DNA of 64,000 nucleotides from Tubulanus polymorphus (lineage: Eukaryota > Animalia > Nemertea): assembly GCF_964204645.1 (NCBI RefSeq), contig NW_027437433.1, positions 1 to 64,000 of the forward strand, in the 5' to 3' direction. The notes below the pieces were generated by a model that saw only the letters and a list, made by a program, of their open reading frames with translations, had not been told where the DNA came from and searched no databases. Shown piece after piece: positions 1,956-15,500 of this stretch. Numbering within the stretch: position 1 is the first letter of the stretch; every line of letters begins with the position of its first letter. Both the position numbers and the translations under genes were made by a program.

Positions 1956-2599
1956 AAACTTTTATTTGTGTTCTCCTCTTCTTCAGAGTCGGTCTATAAA
2001 TAGATTAAGAAAAGATATCTGCATTTTTACTTTAAAAGTCATTATCAGACCACACCGAGGGGGGGTTGAGAGGTTTGAGACGGAGAACCCCGGTTCATAA
2101 TGAATGAATGGTCCCACATCTCAAATATTACTATATATATTACTAAAACCTCCAAAAATCCAGTTGCTACCTGGTTCAAGTTGACGTGTTTTGACCAGTC
2201 AGAAACTTTGACCCCAAGTCCCGATTTATCATTCAAAGTGACGTAGATGTAAACAGTATCTCATGAGACCAGTATTAAGCTCCTAATCGTATCGAAGGAG
2301 TCTCTACGAACCTGTTCGCTGGACGTTCGTCGCCCGATAGTTTATCGAGACAATTATATGCCCTCCATATGATTTCTTCAGTCAGTTTTTATGTCACATA
2401 GTCTCGTGTACGACGCCGTCTCTATAATGAGATCACAAACATAGACTCGCCCAGTGAGAGGGAAGTCGGTGTCTTCAAGTTCCGGTTCTGGAATATCATA
2501 AAAAAAACTACCATAAACCTTTATAAACACCCCTTACACCTCACTCAGTAAAGTATCAAGGCTGAAACTACCCCTGGCTCGATATTTCAAGAGATAACG

Positions 2600-2870
2600 T
2601 AACAAGTGCCCATCCCGCATCCCGCTGTCGCAATAGCTCATCCCCCTATTGTAACAACACAATAGAACACGCCACAATTGAAATATCCCGTGCACTAGCA
2701 ATAGACGATATCCCCCAATTGAGATCGATTAGCCAATCAGCGGCCGCGTACTGTGGAGCGTGTCTGGGCTTGTCGCAGGCGCCGGGAAATTCGATTTCAG
2801 CAATAAATCGAAATATCAGTCGAATCGTGCGCCATCTTTCGCTATTCTGATTGGATTTCACTCGCAAAGG
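2600..2870. promoter_or_regulatory. CpG-rich promoter-like segment (CCAAT boxes, YY1-like CGCCATCTT)
   Basis: Locally GC/CpG rich (GCGGCCGCG). CCAAT at ~2716 and ~2733, ATTGG at ~2850, CGCCATCTT at 2830-2838. Motif evidence only. Confidence 0.3.
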
Positions 2871-3484
2871 AATACAATACGGAGAAAATGTTATAGAGGA
2901 GGTTTTCGAGTGAAAAAATTTAATATTTTCAATCGAAATTTGATGAAAATATTGCCATTTTGTGAATGGATTTCATGAAAATTCTAAGACTGGACACGGA
3001 ATTAAATTTACTTTAAAAACGTAGGATTGGATGAACTTAAATAATCACTGGATACACGTCGGAATCTGAGAAAAAGTTGCAGTTGTGTAAGTAAGTTTTT
3101 TTGTATCAACGACGGATTTATTGTTTTATACTTTAGGGATATGTTTTTCTTGAACTATATTTAGAAAGTAAGGTAAAGGTTAAACTTTGCTCGTTACAAA
3201 ATGCAATTCAAATCTACTCACGACTGGACTAATTTGACCCAACAATCAATATAGTGCTTTATGCATAAATTCTGCGCGATATTTCTCTTTAAAAAACCTC
3301 CTCATTAGTCATCCTCATTAATCTGGGTGTCTAGTTGACTGATACAAATTACGTAACAGTAAAACAACAAACTGCGTTACGATGATGAACTGTGTTTTTA
3401 TGTCGGTTTGATAGTTTATACGAGTTGAATTTACATAAATAAAATATTAGGAATTAAACTGAGGAATATTTTGAGAGAGACTCA

Positions 3485-3785
3485 GTAAGAGAGCGGTGCC
3501 GCATTAGAGACACAGGGCGGGGTAAGAGAGCGGTGCCGCATTAGAGACACAGGGCGGGGTAAGAGAGCGGTGCCGCATTAGAGACACAGGGCGGGGTAAG
3601 AGAGCGGTGCCGCATTAGAGACACAGGGCGGGGTAAGAGAGCGGTGCCACATTAGAGACACAGGGCGGGGTAAGAGAGCGGTGCCGCATTAGAGACACAG
3701 GGCGGGGTAAGAGAGCGGTGCCACATTAGAGACACAGGGCGGGGTAAGAGAGCGGTGCCGCATTAGAGACACAGGGCGGGGTAAG
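3485..3785 (+). repeat. 37-bp GC-rich minisatellite, 8.1 copies
   Basis: Unit GTAAGAGAGCGGTGCCGCATTAGAGACACAGGGCGGG. Copies 5 and 7 carry CCAC for CCGC; the others are identical. Confidence 0.97.
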
Positions 3786-4524
3786 CTGTGTTTTAGGCCG
3801 CGCTCTATTATCAACTACATCTCATTTTGCTGATAATCACTGATCAGCTCTTACAGTAACTCAGTATACTAGTTTGATTCTTGATATAAAGAAAAGTCGA
3901 GGGCAGTAGGGATTTGTACTGGTATCAGGGGTAGATAGCAGATTGCAGAACTAGTTTCACTCATTTCAGTATGAATCAGTTATGACAAAATGAGACAATT
4001 TGTAGACTGCGTTATGTTTTCCAGGGTTTGACTAGTTCTAAGTTGGATGATCGACAAATTTGTCACACATATTAAGGTACTGATCTAAAATGACCATGAT
4101 TTTTGAAAACGATATTTTTTCGGACTAATCGCAAGATTTAACAATCTTAAAGGCACTTAAGTTTATACATTGGTTAAATGGGACATTCGAAATAAATTCA
4201 AGTTAAATGATTTTCAACTAATAAAACTACGATAGCGGTGTTGCATTAGTTCATCACGCAGGAACCTGTCACAAAATCATACACAGATACATTCAGTATT
4301 AAAACGGTCCAGTTTGAGATGATATTGATATTGTATTGTTAATGATTTGCGTATAGTGACCTGCATTGAGTAAACGATGTAAAGAAGATGATTTATAGTC
4401 AAGTGAAATGTGTCAAATGTCATTGTTTATTGTTCTCGGACAATACGATGCAAATGCCTACGTGATGCGCGTTCAAACGGTTTCATCCAGTTTAGATATT
4501 CATATTTTGTACCAGTTTAGCTAA

Positions 4525-4601
4525 ACCGACGAGTATGACTAACTTTGTATCCAATCACCGACGAGTATGACTAATTATGGGTCGAATCATTGATGAGGAT
4601 G
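4525..4601 (+). repeat. Degenerate 32-bp tandem repeat (2-3 copies)
   Basis: ACCGACGAGTATGACTAA at 4525 and 4557, with a decayed third copy ATTGATGAGGATG at 4589. Confidence 0.7.
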
Positions 4602-5217
4602 TTTTGGAGGCTGGACCCGGTGTTGGCGGCACCGAAACCTCATGAAAATATAAAATAATCATTAAAATTCAAATTTCAAGTTAAATCAATTGCTATAAGA
4701 TATTTCTATAGTATCTGATTTATACTGATACATACTTCATGCAGTTCGGAATGGATTGATTTCACCAGAGCCGCGCAGTTTATAGAGCGAAGATGGATTA
4801 TGACCAGTGACCCAATAGTTAGATAATATGAAATATGAAGCTTCATTGTGTTCGACCATTCTTGTCGTTCGTTGTGTCCAGCACAGATTATTACATCTGG
4901 GTGTCAAGTGTACATTATTCATATGACTGTCGGACTTAGAGGTGCTCGCACGTCATGTCTACAGTAAAAATCAGACATTTTATCATACCTACATCTTGTG
5001 AACACGATTGTGAATGGAATCGCGATATAACTAATTCAGGATTAATATGACCTGTTCTCAAAAACTGTGAACTGTTACTGGAAACTAAATTTCTTCTTAT
5101 TCAAGATTTATTCGGCACGTTATCAAAAACACAAGGATTCAAATTGACTCAAAGATTATCATTGGATTCATACATAACACACGCTGGATTGGATAAACTG
5201 TAAGTTAAAAAAACATT

Positions 5218-5905
5218 AACAGCTGAAATTATGTTTTATAGGTTTAGTTAGTTATTAGGAACTTACTCGGTGAGTTAGTAAGTTATAGTATTACATGGAA
5301 ATATAATGGGTTAATTTAAGTGAAGAAATTAGGGTGCTATGCGTGGTGTCCTGGGAGTTCTCAGTTGGAGGAAGCTGTTTGTTTATTTTGATGCTTAATA
5401 TCTTAGTTTCAGGATCCTGTATTTCATGCTTCTTTTTTCCAGGGTTTCTCTCTTTTCTATTTCCAGGTGTTTTTCTTTTTTTTCAGAATATCGGTTTTTT
5501 AAATCTATTGCTTTACTAGACAACGCCTATTATGTAAATGAATTATTTGAAATAAACATGACAATTTCAGGGTCATCGCTGAGACAAGACCCCACAGAGA
5601 CTAGGCCACAGAGTACGTGTCTTCACCCCCAGCACACAACAGAGTGGCCCGATTCAGGTGCGGCCTGTATGTTCTATTTCAGTTAGAAGACCAAGACCCC
5701 CCTAGTCACAGAAGATTGAACCTGAAGTTGAATGATGATGACAGAGTGACTGAAGAATTCCGGTGGGATCTGTATAACATGTCTCTCTTTCAGTATTCCC
5801 CTCCCTAACCCCTAAACCCGAGCCCGAATAGGTAGGCCGAATATATAGGTTAGGTTAGAATAGTTATTTGATAAATCTGTGAATTAGAACATAATTTCAG
5901 CTGTT
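5218..5905. repeat. 18-bp perfect inverted repeat pair bracketing ~650 bp
   Basis: AACAGCTGAAATTATGTT at 5218-5235 and its reverse complement AACATAATTTCAGCTGTT at 5888-5905. Confidence 0.7.
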
Positions 5906-6713
5906 GATATAAAATGCAGTTGTAATTTCAAGTGGAACTTTTTAACAATAAAAGTTGCATTTATTTACAATTGAACTGGATTGAAAATGTTTGACAGTTT
6001 GTGAGTTAAGTGTGATTTGATTAAGATGAAGAGTTGAACTGTTGAACTCTACTTCTTATAAAATACAAATGACATTTACTTACGTACAACTGGTTTCAGG
6101 TTCAGACAGCACCCGCCCCACCCGGTCGGGTCCTATTCCTGTGGTACCTGGGTTTCTGGTTTATTTGGTTGAATTAATTTACTGATTTTGGTCGCGCTGT
6201 TTTTGATGTCGATATTTCTCGCGTATATTTTTAGAAGACGCAGTTTGTAATGTTGAAGTTTAGTTTAATTGATGATTCAAATTATTGAATAACTATTATA
6301 TTTAAATCATTCACACCTTGTTATTTTGAGGTCTCCTCTCAATTTCATATATTAATCTCGTAATAGCAGCGGTTGTTTTCGTACCATTGAACATCAGTGT
6401 TTTATTGCAAACATAGAAATTCATTACATAAAACAGAATTAAAGTCAACAATTTATTACTATTATTCTATAGATTATAAATGTTGGATGTGGCTCGACCT
6501 TTTAAGTCATCATTTTGAAGTCATTTCGTGCTGTTTGATTTTTCTCACGGCGAGTCTAAGTAGGTAGGTCTCTGTGTATTGTAATTTTACGGGGTCAGTT
6601 ACTCCAATTTCGCAACCCTCTCGTTGTCAATACGATAAAATTAAAGAAGTTTCAAAATTCACTACTGAATTCGTTATAAACTGTTGAAACTGATTATAAA
6701 TAGATATGAGTCG

Positions 6714-7139: not shown

Positions 7140-7340
7140 TGAAAGATTCAGAATTTTCTGACTACTTATGCTTCTGAAGTTGATGGATTCAATCTGAAAA
7201 GATGGGTTAAGGCGTATTGAACTGAATTTAAATAGATAGGTGGAAAGATTCTTGAGAATTTTCTTGCTACTTATGCTCCTGATGATGATGGACTCGATCT
7301 GAAATGATAGGATAAGGTAAACTGAACTGATTTCCAGTAG
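7140..7340 (+). repeat. Two diverged satellite monomers (A' and B types)
   Basis: Aligns to ~13620-13816, including the edge-specific variant GACTACTTATGCTTCTGAAGTTGATGG and the B-type GACTCGATCTGAAATGATAGG. Ends at TTTCCAGTAG. Confidence 0.93.
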
Positions 7341-7656
7341 AACGCGTTCTCAAATGTTTTGATACTTTCTCAGTTTGTATCAAAAATATTGGTCCCGATT
7401 TTTGGTCCCTAAGTCCTGAAAAATGATAAATTTACAGTGTAAAATCGTACAAACGTTTCATCTATACCACAAAACACTTTATTTCCTGACCAATTTATGA
7501 TGTTATGTGTGGGCCATAGACCTCAATATCTGCCTGTGATCTCAACTTTCAATTAAGATTACGTAAGCTACTCGTGCCCAAAACGCGACAGGTGCACAAT
7601 AGAAAGTTACGCGCAGGGTACTTTTATTGTCGCCAACATAGAGGACCGATATTTTT

Positions 7657-7706
7657 CTAAAGACTATTAGCCATCATCACGCCTGATGATGGCTAATAGT
7701 CTTTAG
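7657..7706. repeat. Perfect 23-bp hairpin (inverted duplication) overlapping a hammerhead motif
   Basis: CTAAAGACTATTAGCCATCATCA-cgcc-TGATGATGGCTAATAGTCTTTAG. Confidence 0.92.
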
Positions 7707-7719
7707 CCGAAACGTTGCG
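7680..7719 (+). ncRNA. Minimal type I hammerhead ribozyme motif of Penelope-like element type
   Basis: CGC-CTGATGA-T-GGCTAA-tagtct-TTAGCC-GAAAC-GTT-GCG. The core boxes are intact, with a 6-bp stem II, a palindromic ACGT stem III, a GUU cleavage triplet and a 3-bp stem I (CGC/GCG). Confidence 0.7.
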
Positions 7720-8740
7720 CAAATATATATAACTCTTCTATTCAAGTTTCTCGTTTTGGCTGAACTTATTGTGGGATTTCTCTTGTTATTCATATAAGCG
7801 TATTTTAGTCCTGATTTGAATGAATGTACCCACATTTTAGGCAATGAATCGAGACTTGGTTTTATCCCATAGCGTCAACGCTAGTTCATGCTTGAGATGA
7901 GATTGTTGGTTTATATTTTGAACTCTGTAAAGAAGTTTTGTACATTTAAGCGTGAATGACGCACTGTGATGAACTATTGTACGAAATAACATATTAAATT
8001 TAATGAAAGAATCTTAATGTTCCAAAAGGAATATAAGTGTAGTTAAGATTAATAGTTGTTTTTTTCCTTAATGAAAACCGATGATATAAAATAATTTAGC
8101 TTATTATCCCCAAAGTAAAAATCCCCCGGTAAAATATTCCCAATATTTGATCTAACTAACATAAAATCAACACAATTTATTATGTTAAAAAAAACTCAAC
8201 TCATAGATTCTAGATTTTATTGCACTTCTATTAACTGAAGATGATAGTAATGATGTATAGATGTATAATATGATGACCGAACGTTTGATGAGGAATAACT
8301 ACTGTGGTTAGATACAATTCTCATTCTTAGGATACGAATCGGTTGATTGAATTCGGTCATTTAAACTACTGGCTAATTTACAGTGATCACTATTGAAACG
8401 ATTAATTGAAGTGCCCTTGAAATCAAGATAGATTCCTGTTGCGTAAATTAACTAATTTTTAAGCGACCACCTTCTATTGTCGGTATTCGGTTAGCTCTTG
8501 GTTAGCCAGAAGTTTTACCATACAGACTCGGACTAGATGATTGACTTAAATCTTTGAATCAAAATATTGTCACTGGAGTAAATATATATTCCTTATTACA
8601 CTTTCAGCAGTGATCATATTTTATATGTAAATTGAAGGTATTACTGTCATCTAAAGTTAATAAGGTATTAGAATCGCAAAATTTAAGTTGTTCAAAACCA
8701 ACATGAAAATGAGAAGAAAATACACAATATCCGTGTATGG

Positions 8741-8834
8741 TGAATAACGAGACAAATCCCACGATGAATTCAGCTAAAAATCAAATGTTCTACGAGCTAT
8801 GTTTCGGCTAATGCTATTAGCCATCATCAGGCCC
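8741..8834 (-). mobile_element. Second Penelope-like pLTR remnant with a degenerate hammerhead motif
   Basis: The minus strand reads GGGC-CTGATGA-T-GGCTAAT-agc-ATTAGCC-GAAAC-ATA-GCTC, followed by GCTGAATTCATCGTGGGATTTGTCTCGTTATTCA. That tail is homologous to GCTGAACTTATTGTGGGATTTCTCTTGTTATTCA downstream of the first motif (~7759-7792). Confidence 0.65.
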
Positions 8835-9594
8835 CCGTCGACATGAAAATATTGATACGTAAATCGAATCCATATCATAAGCATACTATACCACAAGTTA
8901 AAAAGAGTTATTTAGTTCGAATTAAAAGATAGAAAAATAAAAATATGAAAAGATAGTATGAATAAAAAGTTCATTAATTTCATTTATTCTATGAATTTAT
9001 TTAAAGATTTATTTCAACAAAAGAGATCAATGCACAGTTCAAATATATTGCAGTTGTATTGTGGATGAATATGTTTGAATAAATATCGTGCTTTCAAATG
9101 TTCTTGAAAAATCGCCAAGTGAGGATTTTACCTAGGGGATTTTTACCTACAACCATCTAAAATGCCCCAGGCCCTAAATCCAGTAGGTTTATGGCGAAAG
9201 GTTAAGATTAGGAATGTATTAGCAATATAATTTTTTGAAACAGTATTTTGTCTCCCGATGATTTGATTTGCAGGTCAGACTTAATGTTGACCAAAGTTCT
9301 TAAAGTGAATTGCTTTAAAGTAATAAATATCAATGAAACAATATTATAAATTTTGAAGTGAGTTATTTTGTAATAATCCAATTTGAGTGCACTCCGATGC
9401 ATGCTAAATTCTTATAAATTCATTTATAAATTGAATTGATACATTTTCCCTCCTCACTTATTCATTGTATATTAGTTCTACTAATGAACATAACAGTGGC
9501 TTGTGCCTAATGTCAATAAGGAGCGATTGGGTGCCGCCTCTCTGTGTTAATCTATCACGAAAGATTTAACTCGATTAGAGCCGCTGAAAACGAA

Positions 9595-9708
9595 TGTAGG
9601 TAAAAATCCCCCCCGGTAAATATCCCCCGGTAAAAATCCCACAAGGCAAAAATCCCCCCAGATAAAAATTCCCCTAGGTAAAAATCCCCCCCTGGTAAAA
9701 ATCCCCCC
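9595..9708 (+). repeat. Seven ~14-17-bp GGTAAAAATCCCC repeats, likely the subterminal array of a foldback/MITE-type element
   Basis: Begins TGTAGGTAAAAATCCC. An inverted copy of the same terminus lies at 9121-9151, with degenerate copies at ~8105-8140 (+) and ~10651-10681 (-). Confidence 0.75.
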
Positions 9709-10224
9709 ATATCCACTTTTACTATCCATAAAACTAGAGTAGAAAAAATTAACTTTTTACAACATTATTTAGGAATACATAAGTACATTAGGTATTTTAT
9801 TTTTACTTTTAAACCATAGTTTTTATAGAAAATTTCAAAATTATGATAGTGTCATTTTTGATGCATGTAGCTTGCATGTCGTATATGCTAAGTCACATAA
9901 TAATGTCATTTTTATGCACGTAGCTTGTTAAATGTCACAGATTATCCGAGGTGAATATTGTAACCAACACCACGGAGAAATGCCTCAGTTTAAGAGGAGA
10001 GAATCCCACAATTTTTTATGGACTGACCTTTCCGTGAGAGCGAAGACAAGCAAGTGAAAAATCCCTGAAAATGCGTAAACTGATGTCGTCGCTTACAATT
10101 TCCAGCGCTTTTTTATGGCAGTCCTACATCTATGAAAGTTGTGAAAACCACTCTTCAAATTGCGAGTTAAATCATACTCTGATCGTACCCAGAACGCCTC
10201 GCTGCGCGTCTAATTGTAAAAAAT

Positions 10225-10285
10225 TTTCCAGACCCCTCTATTTGGATTTGTGCACCCCCTCCATGGAATCCTGGATCCGCCGCTG
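10225..10285. mobile_element. Single terminus of a hAT-type MITE
   Basis: Ends CCTGGATCCGCCGCTG (reverse complement CAGCGGCGGATCCAGG), resembling a common invertebrate MITE terminus. No partner end seen. Confidence 0.4.
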
Positions 10286-10409
10286 GAATATAGTTGAATT
10301 TAATAAGGTTATTCATAGGTGCCTAAATGTATTTTGCTTGGTATGGGCTGATAAGTATGCCAAGTATTCTACTGGTACTGTTTTATGTATCAATTAGGTT
10401 TTCGTCGTG

Positions 10410-10498
10410 AAAAATGACCCTCACATTTGGCGATCATACCCTCAAAAGCCCCTCAAATACCCCTCAAATTTCATATCGATGATTCTGTAGGAACCATG
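10410..10498. mobile_element. Single terminus of a hAT-type MITE with CCCTCAAA subterminal repeats
   Basis: CCCTCA(A/C)A occurs four times, then CTGTAGGAACCATG (reverse complement CATGGTTCCTACAG, cf. CAGGGTTCCTAC-type ends). No partner end seen. Confidence 0.4.
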
Positions 10499-12588
10499 TA
10501 CCAAGAATTTTGTTCCCTTATGATATTGAATGGTGTGAAATTGAAGTGTCCCTAATGATATATCTTTATTTAAGTTCAACTAACTTACCCAGTTAGTGAT
10601 GATAGTTGAATAATTAACAAAATAATAGTTGGAATATCGTTTAGGACAAATTAGGATTTTACCGGGTAAGTTTTTTCCTAATAGGCTACCTTTTTGAAGA
10701 GCATGCATCCTGAGATACGAATAAAAAAATTCGTTTGACGCTAAATGCAGAGTTTTCACGGTAGAACATATTTGGACATCAATTAATCACGTGAAGGGGA
10801 TGAAATGACAATTTGTCACTGCTGAGCTTATTTTCCTTCACTGAACTTTTCTAAGTTTTTTCAATATTCTCTAATCCGACATTATATACGCTGCGTACTA
10901 ACTGTACACAATTTCGGGTTTGGGTTGTTTTTGAAAAAAAACAGATTCCCAGAAAATTGTAATTTTTGCGTTCTTGAAAACGGTCAATATGTTATAGCAG
11001 GTTAATGTATAAAACCGCATAGAATAGCTACAATAAACAAAATGTATCCAGGAAAATATATATTTCAGAACACGATCGATTTCACTGAATTTAGCCTCAT
11101 CATGTAGGATAAAATGAACTTTGTTGATATTGTGATTGTGCTCTCGTTAGCTGTCGCATAGCTTATTCGAATCGCTATCGAAAGTAACAAAACAATGGTC
11201 ACATGTGTCAATGAACTTATCGCTATTCGAAGTAATGGGCGTATTGAAAAATTTCTCAAGCACTTCGAATTTCCGATTGCTTAATCGCCAAATTTGCATT
11301 CGAAATATTAAGCCGATCTATTCTAATTCATACCTGGTCGTGTTATAAACAAGCGTTTAGTTTGTACTTTAAAATAAAATGAAATAGATTGATTGATGAA
11401 ATACAAAACAAGTCAAACAAACCAACTAACTGACTACCGCTGAGTTATTTATATTTGATGAAAGAACATATTCTAGTTACTGACATTGGCTCGAACCTTG
11501 ATTATTGTCTAAGTTGTACTATAACTAAGTATGCCAATGGATGTGTACATGCCCCTCTCTGATTGGCTAGAATCCTTGCATTCGATAGAAACTGACGGCA
11601 TCAGTGAACTAACGGGGAAATTAGAATTGTATGTTTGACCACGTATTTTTCGTTTTTGAGTCCATGGTTTTGGCTCTGGTTTTATCGTGAGTTTGATTGA
11701 CGTACATTGTAGAGAACAATGGTTGGGATTCGAATAACGTGCATCTTTTATTCAGAAAGAGTATCATTACGTATATACATGTAGAAGTTAATACAATAAC
11801 TTAATTCAGAATTATCTCATCACGCAGAACCAGTGAAATAGCCGTTGTAAAGCCGCAAAGTACATTGAATGAAATTGACATAGTGTCAACGTCTTACGGT
11901 CAACAAATGAAACATATTGTACAATAATGAACGAATCAATGAGTAGTGCTCACGCATTTGTTTCCATTTCATAAGAATCAATTTCAAACAGATGAATCAG
12001 ATTCGAATTTTTGCTTCTTCGTTATGCGAAGTTTTTTTTTTTTATACCAGGGACTCTTAAACGATTTAGGTTTTAGAGTCCATGGTTATATGAATATCTT
12101 ATGATTTCTCAACTTTCATCAAATACTTAGGAATGCCATTGAAAGATTTTCAAACCATTGAACGTTTGGGTAAAAGTTCTGCTAAATTTGACTACCATCG
12201 GCTTTTTAGATAATCTCCACGAAGGTCAAAATTTTAGTGATTTGACCTTGGGAGGTTTAAACCTCCCGAATCCAATTTGCGAAATATCTTCTCTTTGTCG
12301 GCGGTAATGAAAGAATACATAGAGCGAAGTTTCTATAGTGCGCCGGCCGCATTTTGTTCACGAATAGCTTACGTAATAAATTGAAAGTGGAGATAACAAG
12401 AGGATATAGCGCTCTATGGCCCACTCTCAATTCATAAACTGGTCCGCAAATAAAGTGTTTAGAAGTATAATTGACACGTTTGTACGATTTTGCGCTGTTT
12501 ATTTATCATTTTTCAGGACTCAAGGACCAATAATTGGCAAAATTTTTGATACAAACTGAGAAAGTATCAAAACATTTGGGAACGTGTT

Positions 12589-15500
12589 GTAGATGGGCTG
12601 AAAGATACAGATTTTTCTAGCTTAATATGGTCCTAAAGATGATGAATTCTATCTTAATCGATGGGTTAGGGTGTACTGAACTGATTTTCAATAGATTGGC
12701 AGAAAGAATCAGAATTTTCTGGATGCTTTTGGTTCTGGAAGAAGATGGATTAAATCTCAAAAGATGGGTTAAGGCGTATTGAACTGATTTCAAATAGATA
12801 GGTTGAAAGAATCAGATTTTTCTGGATGCTTTTGGTTCTGGAAGAAGATGGATTAAATCTCAAAAGATGGGTTAAGGCGTATTGAACTGATTTCAAATAG
12901 ATAGGTTGAAAGAATCAGAATTTCTGGCTGCTTTTGGTTCTGAAGAAGATGGATTAAATCTGAAAAGATGGGTTAAGGCGTATTGAACTGATTTAAAATA
13001 GATTGGTGGAAAGAATCAGAATTTTCTGGCTGCTTTTGGTTCTGAAGATGATGGATTCAATCTGAAAAGATGGGTTAAGGCGTATTGAACTGATTTCAAA
13101 TAGATAGGTGGAAAGATACAGATTTTTCTTGCTAAATATGGTTCTAAAGATGATGAATTCTATCTTAATTGATGGGTTTGGGTGTATTGAACTGATTTCA
13201 AATAGATAGGTGGAAAGAATCAGAATTTCCTGGCTGCTTTTGGTTCTGAAGATGATGGATTCAATCTGAAAAGATGGGGTAAGGCGTATTGAACTGATTT
13301 CAAATAGATAGGTGGAAAGAAACCGAATTTTCTGGCTGCTTTTGTTTCTAAAGATGATGGATCAATGTGAAAAGATGGGTTAAGGCGTATTGAACTGATT
13401 TCAAATAGATAGGTGGAAAGAATCAGAATTTTCTGGCTGCATTTGGTTCTGAAGATGTTAGACTCGATCTGAAATGATAGGTTAAGGTAAACTGAACTTA
13501 TTTCGAGTAGATGGGTTGAAAGATACAGATTTTTCTAGCTAAATATGGTTCTAAAGATGATGAATTCTATCTTAATTGATGGGTTAGGATGTACAGAACT
13601 GATTTTTAATAGATTGGTTGAAAGATTAAGAATTTTCTGACTACTTATGCTTCTGAAGTTGATGGATTCAATCTGAAAAGATGAGTTAAGGCGTATTGAA
13701 CTGATTTAAAATAGATAGGTTGAAAGAATCAGAATTTTCTGGCTGCATTTGGTTCTGAAGATGATAGACTCGATCCGAAATGATAGGTTAAGGTAAACTG
13801 AACTTATTTCGAGTAGATGGGTTGAAAGATACAGATTTTTCTAGCTAAATATGGTTCTAAAGATGATGAATTCTATCTTAATTGATGGGTTTGGGTGTAT
13901 TGAACTGATTTCAAAGAGATAGGTGAAAAGAATAAGAATTTTCTGGCTGCTTTTGGTTCTGAAGATGATGGATTCAATCTGAAAAGATGGGTTAAGGCGC
14001 ATTGAACTGATTTAGAATAGATAGGTGGAAAGAATCAGAATTTTCTGGCTGCTTTCGGTTCTGAAGATGATGGATTCAATCTGAAAAGATGGGTTAAGGC
14101 GTATTGAACTGATTTCAAATAGATAGGTGGAAAGATTCAGAATTTTCTTGCTACTTATGCTTCTGAAATTGATGGATTCAATCTGAAAAGATGAGTAAAG
14201 GCGTATTGAACTGATTTCAAATAGATAGGTTGAAAGAATCAGAATTTTCTGGCTGCTTTTGGTTCTGAAGATGATAGACTCGATCCGAAATGATAGGTTA
14301 AGGTAAACTGAACTTATTTCGAGTAGATGGGTTGAAAGATACAGATTTTTCTAGCTAAATATGGTTCTAAAGATGATGAATTCTATCTTAATTGATGGGT
14401 TAGGATGTACTGCACTGATTTCAAATATATAGGTGGAAAGAATAAGAATTTTCTGGCTGCTTTTGGTTCTGAAGATGATGGATTCAATCTGAAAAGATGA
14501 GTAAAGGCGTATTGAACTGATTTCAAATAGATAGGTGGAAAGAAACAGAATTTTCTGGCTGCTTTTGGTTCTAAAGATGATGGATTCAATCTGAAAAGAT
14601 GAGTAAAGGCGTATTGAACTGATTTCAAATAGATAGGTGGAAAGAAACAGAATTTTCTGGCTGCTTTTGGTTCTAAAGATGGATTCAATCTGAAAAGATG
14701 AGTAAAGGCGTATTGAACTGATTTAAAATAGATAGGTGGAAAGAATCAGAATTTTCTGGCTGCATTTGGTTCTGAAGATGATAGACTCGATCCGAAATGA
14801 TAGGTTAAGGTAAACTGAACTTATTTCGAGTAGATGGGTTGAAAGATACAGATTTTTCTAGCTAAATATGGTTCTAAAGATGATGAATTCTATCTTAATT
14901 GATGGGTTTGGGTGTATTGAACTGATATCAAATAGATAGGTGGAAAGAATAAGAATTTTCTGGCTGCTTTTGGTTCTGAAGATGATGGATTCAATCTGAA
15001 AAGATGAGTAAAGGCGTATTGAACTGATTTCAAATAGATAGGTGGAAAGAAACAGAATTTTCTGGCTGCTTTTGGTTCTAAAGATGATGGATTCAATCTG
15101 AAAAGATGAGTAAAGGCGTATTGAACTGATTTCAAATAGATAGGTGGAAAGAAACAGAATTTTCTGGCTGCTTTTGGTTCTAAAGATGATGGATTCAATC
15201 TGAAAAGATGGGTTAAGGCTTATTGAACTGATTTAAAATAGATAGGTGGAAAGAATCAGAATTTCCTGGCTGCTTTTGGTTCTGAAGATGATGGATTCAA
15301 TCTGAAAAGATGGGTTAAGGCGTATTGAACTGATTTCAAATAGATAGGTGGAAAGAAACCGAATTTTCTGGTTGCTTTTGTTTCTAAAGATGATGGATCA
15401 ATGTGAAAAGATGGGTTAAGGCGTATTGAACTGATTTCAAATAGATAGGTGGAAAGAAACCGGATTTTCTGGCTGCTTTTGGTTCTAAAGATGATGGATT

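Follow-up and report, generated by a model that had tools for sequence, protein, structure and literature searches.

An insertion at the edge of a satellite array

The first 64 000 nucleotides of contig NW_027437433.1 of the nemertean Tubulanus polymorphus (the whole of this stretch is called the window below) consist mostly of an array of a 102-bp satellite, and the apparently unique block at the edge of this array raises the question of what it is and how it came to be there. The block proves to be a genuine transposon insertion: a copy of 5248 bp, on the forward strand at positions 7341–12588, sits in exact satellite register between the two copies of a 4-bp target site duplication (TSD), and it is a rearranged member of a gene-less family with a full length of 6.37 kb. 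Our preferred interpretation, which we regard as likely though by no means certain, is that it represents an old deleted copy of a cut-and-paste family of about 6.37 kb that has no gene of its own and would be mobilised in trans, most likely by a transposase of the DUF7869/Sola1 type.

The left tip of the copy begins at 7341 (AACGCGTTCTC...) and the right tip finishes at 12588 (...GGGAACGTGTT), each being bordered by GTAG (7337–7340 and 12589–12592), identified as the TSD by reading of the sequence, by comparison with the TSDs of other copies and by rebuilding the empty site. When the tips are aligned, the first 47 nucleotides of the two arms are identical at 45 of 47 positions, the only differences being at positions 4 and 10. 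An inverted-repeat finder returned four collinear pairs of arm segments between 7338–7608 and 12327–12591, and the similarity of the arms reaches inward over 316 bp at 83% identity (in full-length members of the family, over about 420 bp at 85%). The coordinates, the tip alignment and the arm pairs agree with one another and with the original prediction, made from the window alone, of a 4-bp GTAG duplication bounding an element with long terminal inverted repeats (TIRs).

The satellite itself records the event. To the left of the insert, at 7141–7336, lie two degenerate satellite units that form the edge of the array and are in phase with its units, to which they are 81–86% identical; to the right, the host array runs from 12593 to 64000, tandem-repeat analysis delimiting it as 504 copies of period 102 at 12600–64000, preceded by 12.6 kb of other sequence. 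In terms of satellite phase, the sequence left of the insert stops at 32 and that right of it begins at 29, so that the two overlap by 4 bp. An empty site rebuilt with a single GTAG matches the array junctions at 74 of 80 positions, versus 26 mismatches when both GTAG copies are retained and 29 when neither is. Removing the insert together with one GTAG hence restores the so-called B-C junction of the satellite, as had been proposed, and this type of junction recurs in the array: the GTAGATGGG-type junction occurs there 83–84 times, mostly at distances of 408 or 510 bp (i.e. every four or five units).

A recently active family in the Tubulanus polymorphus genome

The Tubulanus polymorphus assembly (268 Mb in 77 contigs) was searched for further copies. 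The 25-nt tip has 94 exact occurrences and 118 with up to three mismatches, while a control with the reversed pattern gave none; 118 tips correspond to some 55–60 elements. Searches with either of the 300-bp ends yielded 40 scored matches at 94–98% identity, of about 240 candidates, and left and right ends pair at distances of 6.1–6.4 kb. From seven full copies, 97.1–99.9% identical to one another, we derived a consensus of 6370 bp. Five of these seven are mutually 99.4–99.9% identical, which indicates that the family moved very recently.

TSDs were compared in 20 left/right pairs, one of which is a segmental duplicate of another, leaving 19 independent insertions; one pair was re-paired by means of its TSD, CTCG joining C8:2170484 to an end at 2180866. 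Perfect 4-bp duplications of varied sequence (ATAC, CAAT, ATTT, TTTC, AATC, CCAT, GTTT and CTCG, for example) flank 17 of the 19 insertions, the remaining two comprising one 3/4 match and one rearranged locus. The base preceding the terminal AAC varies freely among copies.

The flanks further reveal a preferred target, the weak palindrome CAN|ATAT|NTG. On the left, C occupies position -7 in 21 of 30 flanks (p = 4e-10) and A position -6 in 24 of 30 (p = 1e-7); on the right, the mirrored C is present in 17 of 33 flanks (p = 9e-6) and A at -6 in 14 of 33, which is not significant (p = 0.26). The duplicated 4-mer itself tends to ATAT. A weakly palindromic target of this kind is what would be expected of a dimeric enzyme making cuts with a 4-bp stagger.

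Some copies have peculiar surroundings. Two copies at C7:10486577-10492974 and C7:10502557-10508954, 16 kb apart, share identical flanks and TSDs and represent a segmental duplication. Four left ends lie within 58 kb at C3:22229885-22288262, three of them on the same strand and about 11.5 kb apart. The left ends at C1:15217286 (+) and C1:15230645 (-), loci L002 and L003, face each other at a distance of 13 kb with nearly identical outer flanks; they belong to an inverted duplication that takes in the end of the element. At C4:19696775-19696979, two right-type tips facing each other 205 bp apart look like a miniature derivative of the family. Nested insertions were encountered as well. The copy L068 carries an insert of 2.55 kb (L068:2474-5027) with consensus positions 4041–4049 on either side, a likely 9-bp TSD; the insert contains a 173-amino-acid open reading frame (ORF) without a Pfam match but with a TNN..ESWN motif, which we take to be that of Mutator-like transposases. 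The copy L069 carries one of 1.07 kb (L069:2967-4037) with a 271-amino-acid ORF, likewise without a Pfam match; this insert may represent the 3' portion of a retroelement.

Invariant tips and lack of coding capacity

The first 47 nucleotides are identical across all the ends compared, including those of relatives that are about 20% diverged over the rest of the arm, a pattern expected of a putative transposase binding site. The left tip opens with the 8-nt palindrome AACGCGTT, and nucleotides 17–25 and 37–45 form a 9-bp inverted repeat that could fold into a hairpin with a 9-bp stem, although the associated z of about -2.4 to -2.7 is modest.

The longest stop-to-stop frame in the 6370-bp consensus has only 92 amino acids, and none of the ten longest frames has a Pfam match below E = 0.02. 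A tblastn search with a DUF7869 protein found no similarity in the consensus or the window copy. Scans of the consensus for Rfam families and transfer RNA genes gave no match, a tandem-repeat scan of it gave nothing notable, and neither the frames nor the Pfam searches point to a captured host gene or an accessory ORF in the family. Since it has no open frame above 92 amino acids and no Pfam, Rfam or transfer RNA match, the family is non-autonomous, as the original prediction had it, and must presumably be mobilised in trans.

A probable gene-bearing relative and a candidate transposase

What enzyme might act in trans is suggested by a single relative. The genome contains 66 matches to the profile PF25273 (DUF7869), and one set of them lies inside a right-type tip at C2:16685892 (end L079), whose 47-nt tip is identical to that of the family and which is 80% identical to it over 480 bp. 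Pieces of PF25273 are found at C2:16688211-16689145 on the minus strand, 2.3–3.3 kb inside this tip and reading toward it. Between the tip and these pieces, blocks collinear with the family follow at 557–753, 948–1041 and 1178–1260 bp from the end, with alignment scores of 40, 54 and 30 (shuffled controls scored at most 22, unrelated flanks mostly 15–24 and in one case 31). As these blocks continue inward, no foreign junction lies just inside the arm. The internal stretch of the C2 locus recurs at C8:2516726-2517540, where a PF25273 match (C8:2515745-2515888) adjoins it, with relative order and orientation as at C2. We read the C2 locus as a probable decayed gene-bearing relative of the family and, because it alone, among the relatives with these tips, bears a gene and this gene contains DUF7869, a DUF7869-type transposase appears to be the most likely source of mobility.

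In the mechanism that we envisage, this enzyme, supplied in trans, would recognise the invariant 47-nt tips, cut with a 4-bp stagger and prefer AT-rich sites of the form CAN|ATAT|NTG; the satellite, which offers one near-match to such a site per unit, would then have been hit once, two units in from the edge of the array.

Several facts weigh against the link to DUF7869 and to Sola1. No partner end of the C2 relative was found by a TIR search or with an exact 15-mer, and the middle DUF7869 piece at this locus contains two TAG codons, possibly marking an intron or a pseudogene. PF25273 is missing from the long copies with intact tips (10–32 kb), among which are C3:18378824-18393112, C1:14546815-14572204, C6:18182199-18192630 and C12:8534699-8566934, and no complete autonomous copy was found. 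Chance adjacency does occur: the distance between the end at C1:15087660 and an unrelated DUF7869-like gene beyond it is only 680 bp. Moreover, the Pfam entry for DUF7869 describes only a domain of unknown function, and our equation of it with a Sola1 transposase is an assumption based on the DNC..NKN and GHTH..D motifs of Sola-type DDD cores; a complete DUF7869 frame in the genome displays the motifs D...DNC..NKN...GHTHEDID. A sequence search of the PDB with a DUF7869 protein returned no relative, a protein atlas search returned DUF7869 clusters only, and a single-sequence fold had a mean confidence (predicted local distance difference test) of 39, which makes it unusable.

Two other genes were considered as partners and rejected. 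The DUF7869-like gene just mentioned (C1:15085530-15086976, minus strand) is external to the element, a chance neighbour from a different small family; its relatives are at C3:14255991-14257737 and C2:14755198-14755882, and that family has a 233-amino-acid first exon with a Cys-rich stretch (CKC...C), one copy having an open frame of 693 amino acids. A 252-amino-acid ORF with two C2H2-like zinc fingers, found inside the ends L075 (353–1108, minus strand, i.e. C1:14571032-14571787) and L076, belongs to an unrelated and extremely abundant element present there as a nested insertion, for which a first look gave 2299 candidates, with many intact frames of about 1356–1359 amino acids at 93–96% identity. 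A further DUF7869 locus pair, L071 and L072 (C10:8118398-8121967 and C36:86117-89686), is 99.8% identical over 3.57 kb and has a 287-amino-acid ORF that encodes the DUF7869 domain in full (250 bits), representing a recently duplicated or active DUF7869 element.

Anatomy of the copy in the window

Comparison with the consensus shows that 5.25 kb, originally taken for the length of the element, is the length of a deleted and rearranged copy of a 6.37-kb one. The left arm (7341–7660, beginning with the 47-nt invariant tip) corresponds to consensus positions 1–317 at 96.9% identity, and is followed by a 126-bp filler (7661–7786) that stands in place of positions 318–1986, i.e. of 1.67 kb deleted from the element. 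Next come an internal block (7787–9595; positions 1987–3771, 96.2%), a copy-specific segment of 907 bp (9596–10502) replacing the 0.5 kb of positions 3772–4278, and the remaining internal block with the right arm (10503–12588; positions 4279–6370, 96.9%), the right arm proper occupying about 12149–12588; all these parts are on the forward strand. Of the filler, 112 bp are identical to a stretch within the nested insert of L068. A perfect palindrome with 23-bp arms and a 4-nt spacer (7657–7706) overlaps the filler exactly at the junction of the internal deletion and may have been left by hairpin-mediated repair or by a tiny palindromic element. The 907-bp segment, which was not found in the other family copies sampled, contains a 16-bp tandem repeat at 9598–9709. 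Overall identity of the window copy to the consensus is about 96.5%; at about 3.5% from this young consensus, it is an older, damaged, internally deleted derivative of the 6.37-kb element in which both tips have been kept.

Two features of the window outside the insertion may be mentioned here: a 37-bp minisatellite of eight copies with a 98% match at 3485–3785, and a 123-amino-acid ORF on the minus strand at 85–456, without a Pfam match, which presumably is the tail of ORF2 of a non-long-terminal-repeat retrotransposon.

Alternative explanations

The position of the copy invites the idea, raised in the original prediction, that the element targets or bounds the satellite, or that the satellite is cargo carried between outward-facing arms. 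Each satellite unit does contain, once, a site close to the preferred one (CAA|ATAG|ATA in the satellite consensus), and the insert is positioned two units from the array edge. The sample of other copies, however, makes any such relationship very improbable: the satellite adjoins none of the about 60 other family ends sampled and, among 79 fetched loci, it is present only in the two that were cut from the window itself. A search with the 25-nt tip detected no second family tip along the 51 kb that the array spans here, full-length family copies contain no satellite, and arms facing outward around satellite sequence were never seen. The checks that could have spoken against an insertion, for outward-facing arms and for absent TSDs elsewhere, favour a plain one, and the landing in the satellite is a single event owing to chance and not to preference: a real but ordinary insertion. 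That the block arose by segmental duplication or by an assembly join, with no transposition involved, is an even remoter prospect. Segmental duplication did spread some copies, as the C7 pair with identical flanks and the inverted pair on C1 attest, but at least 17 loci with differing flanks each have their own perfect 4-bp duplication, and the satellite phase at the insertion in the window is exactly restored. We assign a similarly negligible probability to a Tc1/mariner/pogo-type element whose target duplication would be TA and whose terminal base would be mismatched. This parse, offered in the original prediction as an alternative, is prompted by the TA within GTAG on either side when the window is viewed alone, and it is contradicted by the variable 4-bp duplications at other loci, many of which (ATTT, TTTC, AATC, CCAT, GTTT and CTCG) are without TA, and by the variable base before AAC.

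The only alternative of some weight, though still unlikely, concerns the superfamily. The family may fall in a different superfamily that makes 4-bp TSDs, be it Ginger-like, Chapaev/CMC, Academ or one not yet described, the DUF7869 genes near the C2 and C8 relatives being chance neighbours or nested elements. Nowhere does a transposase gene lie between two intact tips, C1 provides an example of a DUF7869-like gene next to an end by chance, and the loci of the family and of DUF7869 cluster in the same repeat-rich mid-chromosome regions. On the other hand, the C2 relative is homologous to the family, collinearly and without a break, from the tip inward for over 1 kb, and the same stretch adjoins a DUF7869 match at a second locus with equal relative order and orientation. 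The termini of CMC elements begin with CAC, unlike the AAC...GTT tips of this family. These tips differ also from the TG...CA termini of Ginger (PMC10741241). A relationship of the family to Sola1 seems probable. A distinctly less probable variant is that the family with the 47-nt tip and the CAN|NNNN|NTG target is moved by an enzyme other than a classical Sola1 transposase, be it a separate lineage of the DUF7869 type or another transposase unlinked to it. If so, the family would provide the first evidence for an undescribed group with 4-bp TSDs in nemerteans, and the success of a gene-less element of 6.4 kb, with copies up to 99.9% identical, would reflect something in its conserved interior.

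Significance and comparison with known transposons

An ordinary insertion explains the ‘unique’ block that borders the 51-kb satellite, which removes the idea of a satellite-specific element, and a gene-less DNA transposon family, fairly large and recently active, is documented in a poorly studied animal phylum. Its precise ends, TSD length and target preference are useful for repeat annotation. To our knowledge, Sola1-type transposases have not been characterised biochemically or structurally; if the link to DUF7869 holds, the family offers a defined pair of tips for testing a transposase of this type.

With a 4-bp TSD, the family shares the duplication length of the piggyBac and Kolobok elements. 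Their TSD is TTAA, whereas the TSDs here are variable and include no TTAA among 19. Setting the AAC termini and the GTAG duplication against TTAA and against the TGT ends of Ginger, the original prediction held that the element did not fit the usual groups with 4-bp TSDs, but Sola had been omitted from that comparison. According to PMC10741241, which summarises Bao et al. 2009, Sola elements are 2–9 kb long, have 4-bp TSDs and TIRs of 11–1124 bp, and encode a DDD transposase. The family, compared with them by description only, agrees in its variable 4-bp TSD, its imperfect TIRs of about 420 bp at 85% identity and its length of 6370 bp; a diverged relative with the same tips probably carries DUF7869, a candidate Sola1 domain. 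It differs in that none of its 55–60 or so copies contains a transposase gene, and, as a gene-less family cannot display the DDD transposase of the group, it could be counted among Sola elements only by descent. A parallel is reported from Ectocarpus, where Sola1 transposase genes are often pseudogenised and movement in trans is presumed (PMC12477816). Ginger elements are distinguished by TG...CA termini and a Gypsy-like integrase, the TSDs of Ginger and GingerRoot being 4–6 bp and their TIRs 40–270 bp (PMC10741241); the family resembles them in TSD length and in its fairly long TIRs, and departs from them in its AAC...GTT tips and in that no integrase was found. Miniature inverted-repeat transposable elements, non-coding as well, are mostly under 500 bp and reach high copy numbers (PMC10741241), unlike elements of 6.1–6.4 kb in about 55–60 copies. 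There are also large gene-less DNA transposons mobilised in trans, i.e. giant non-autonomous families and the analogues of Pack-MULEs (PMC12477816). From these the family differs in that it showed neither a captured host gene nor an accessory ORF. With such large gene-less transposons it has in common a length of several kilobases, the absence of a transposase gene, recent amplification and ends that are the only part shared with a gene-bearing relative.

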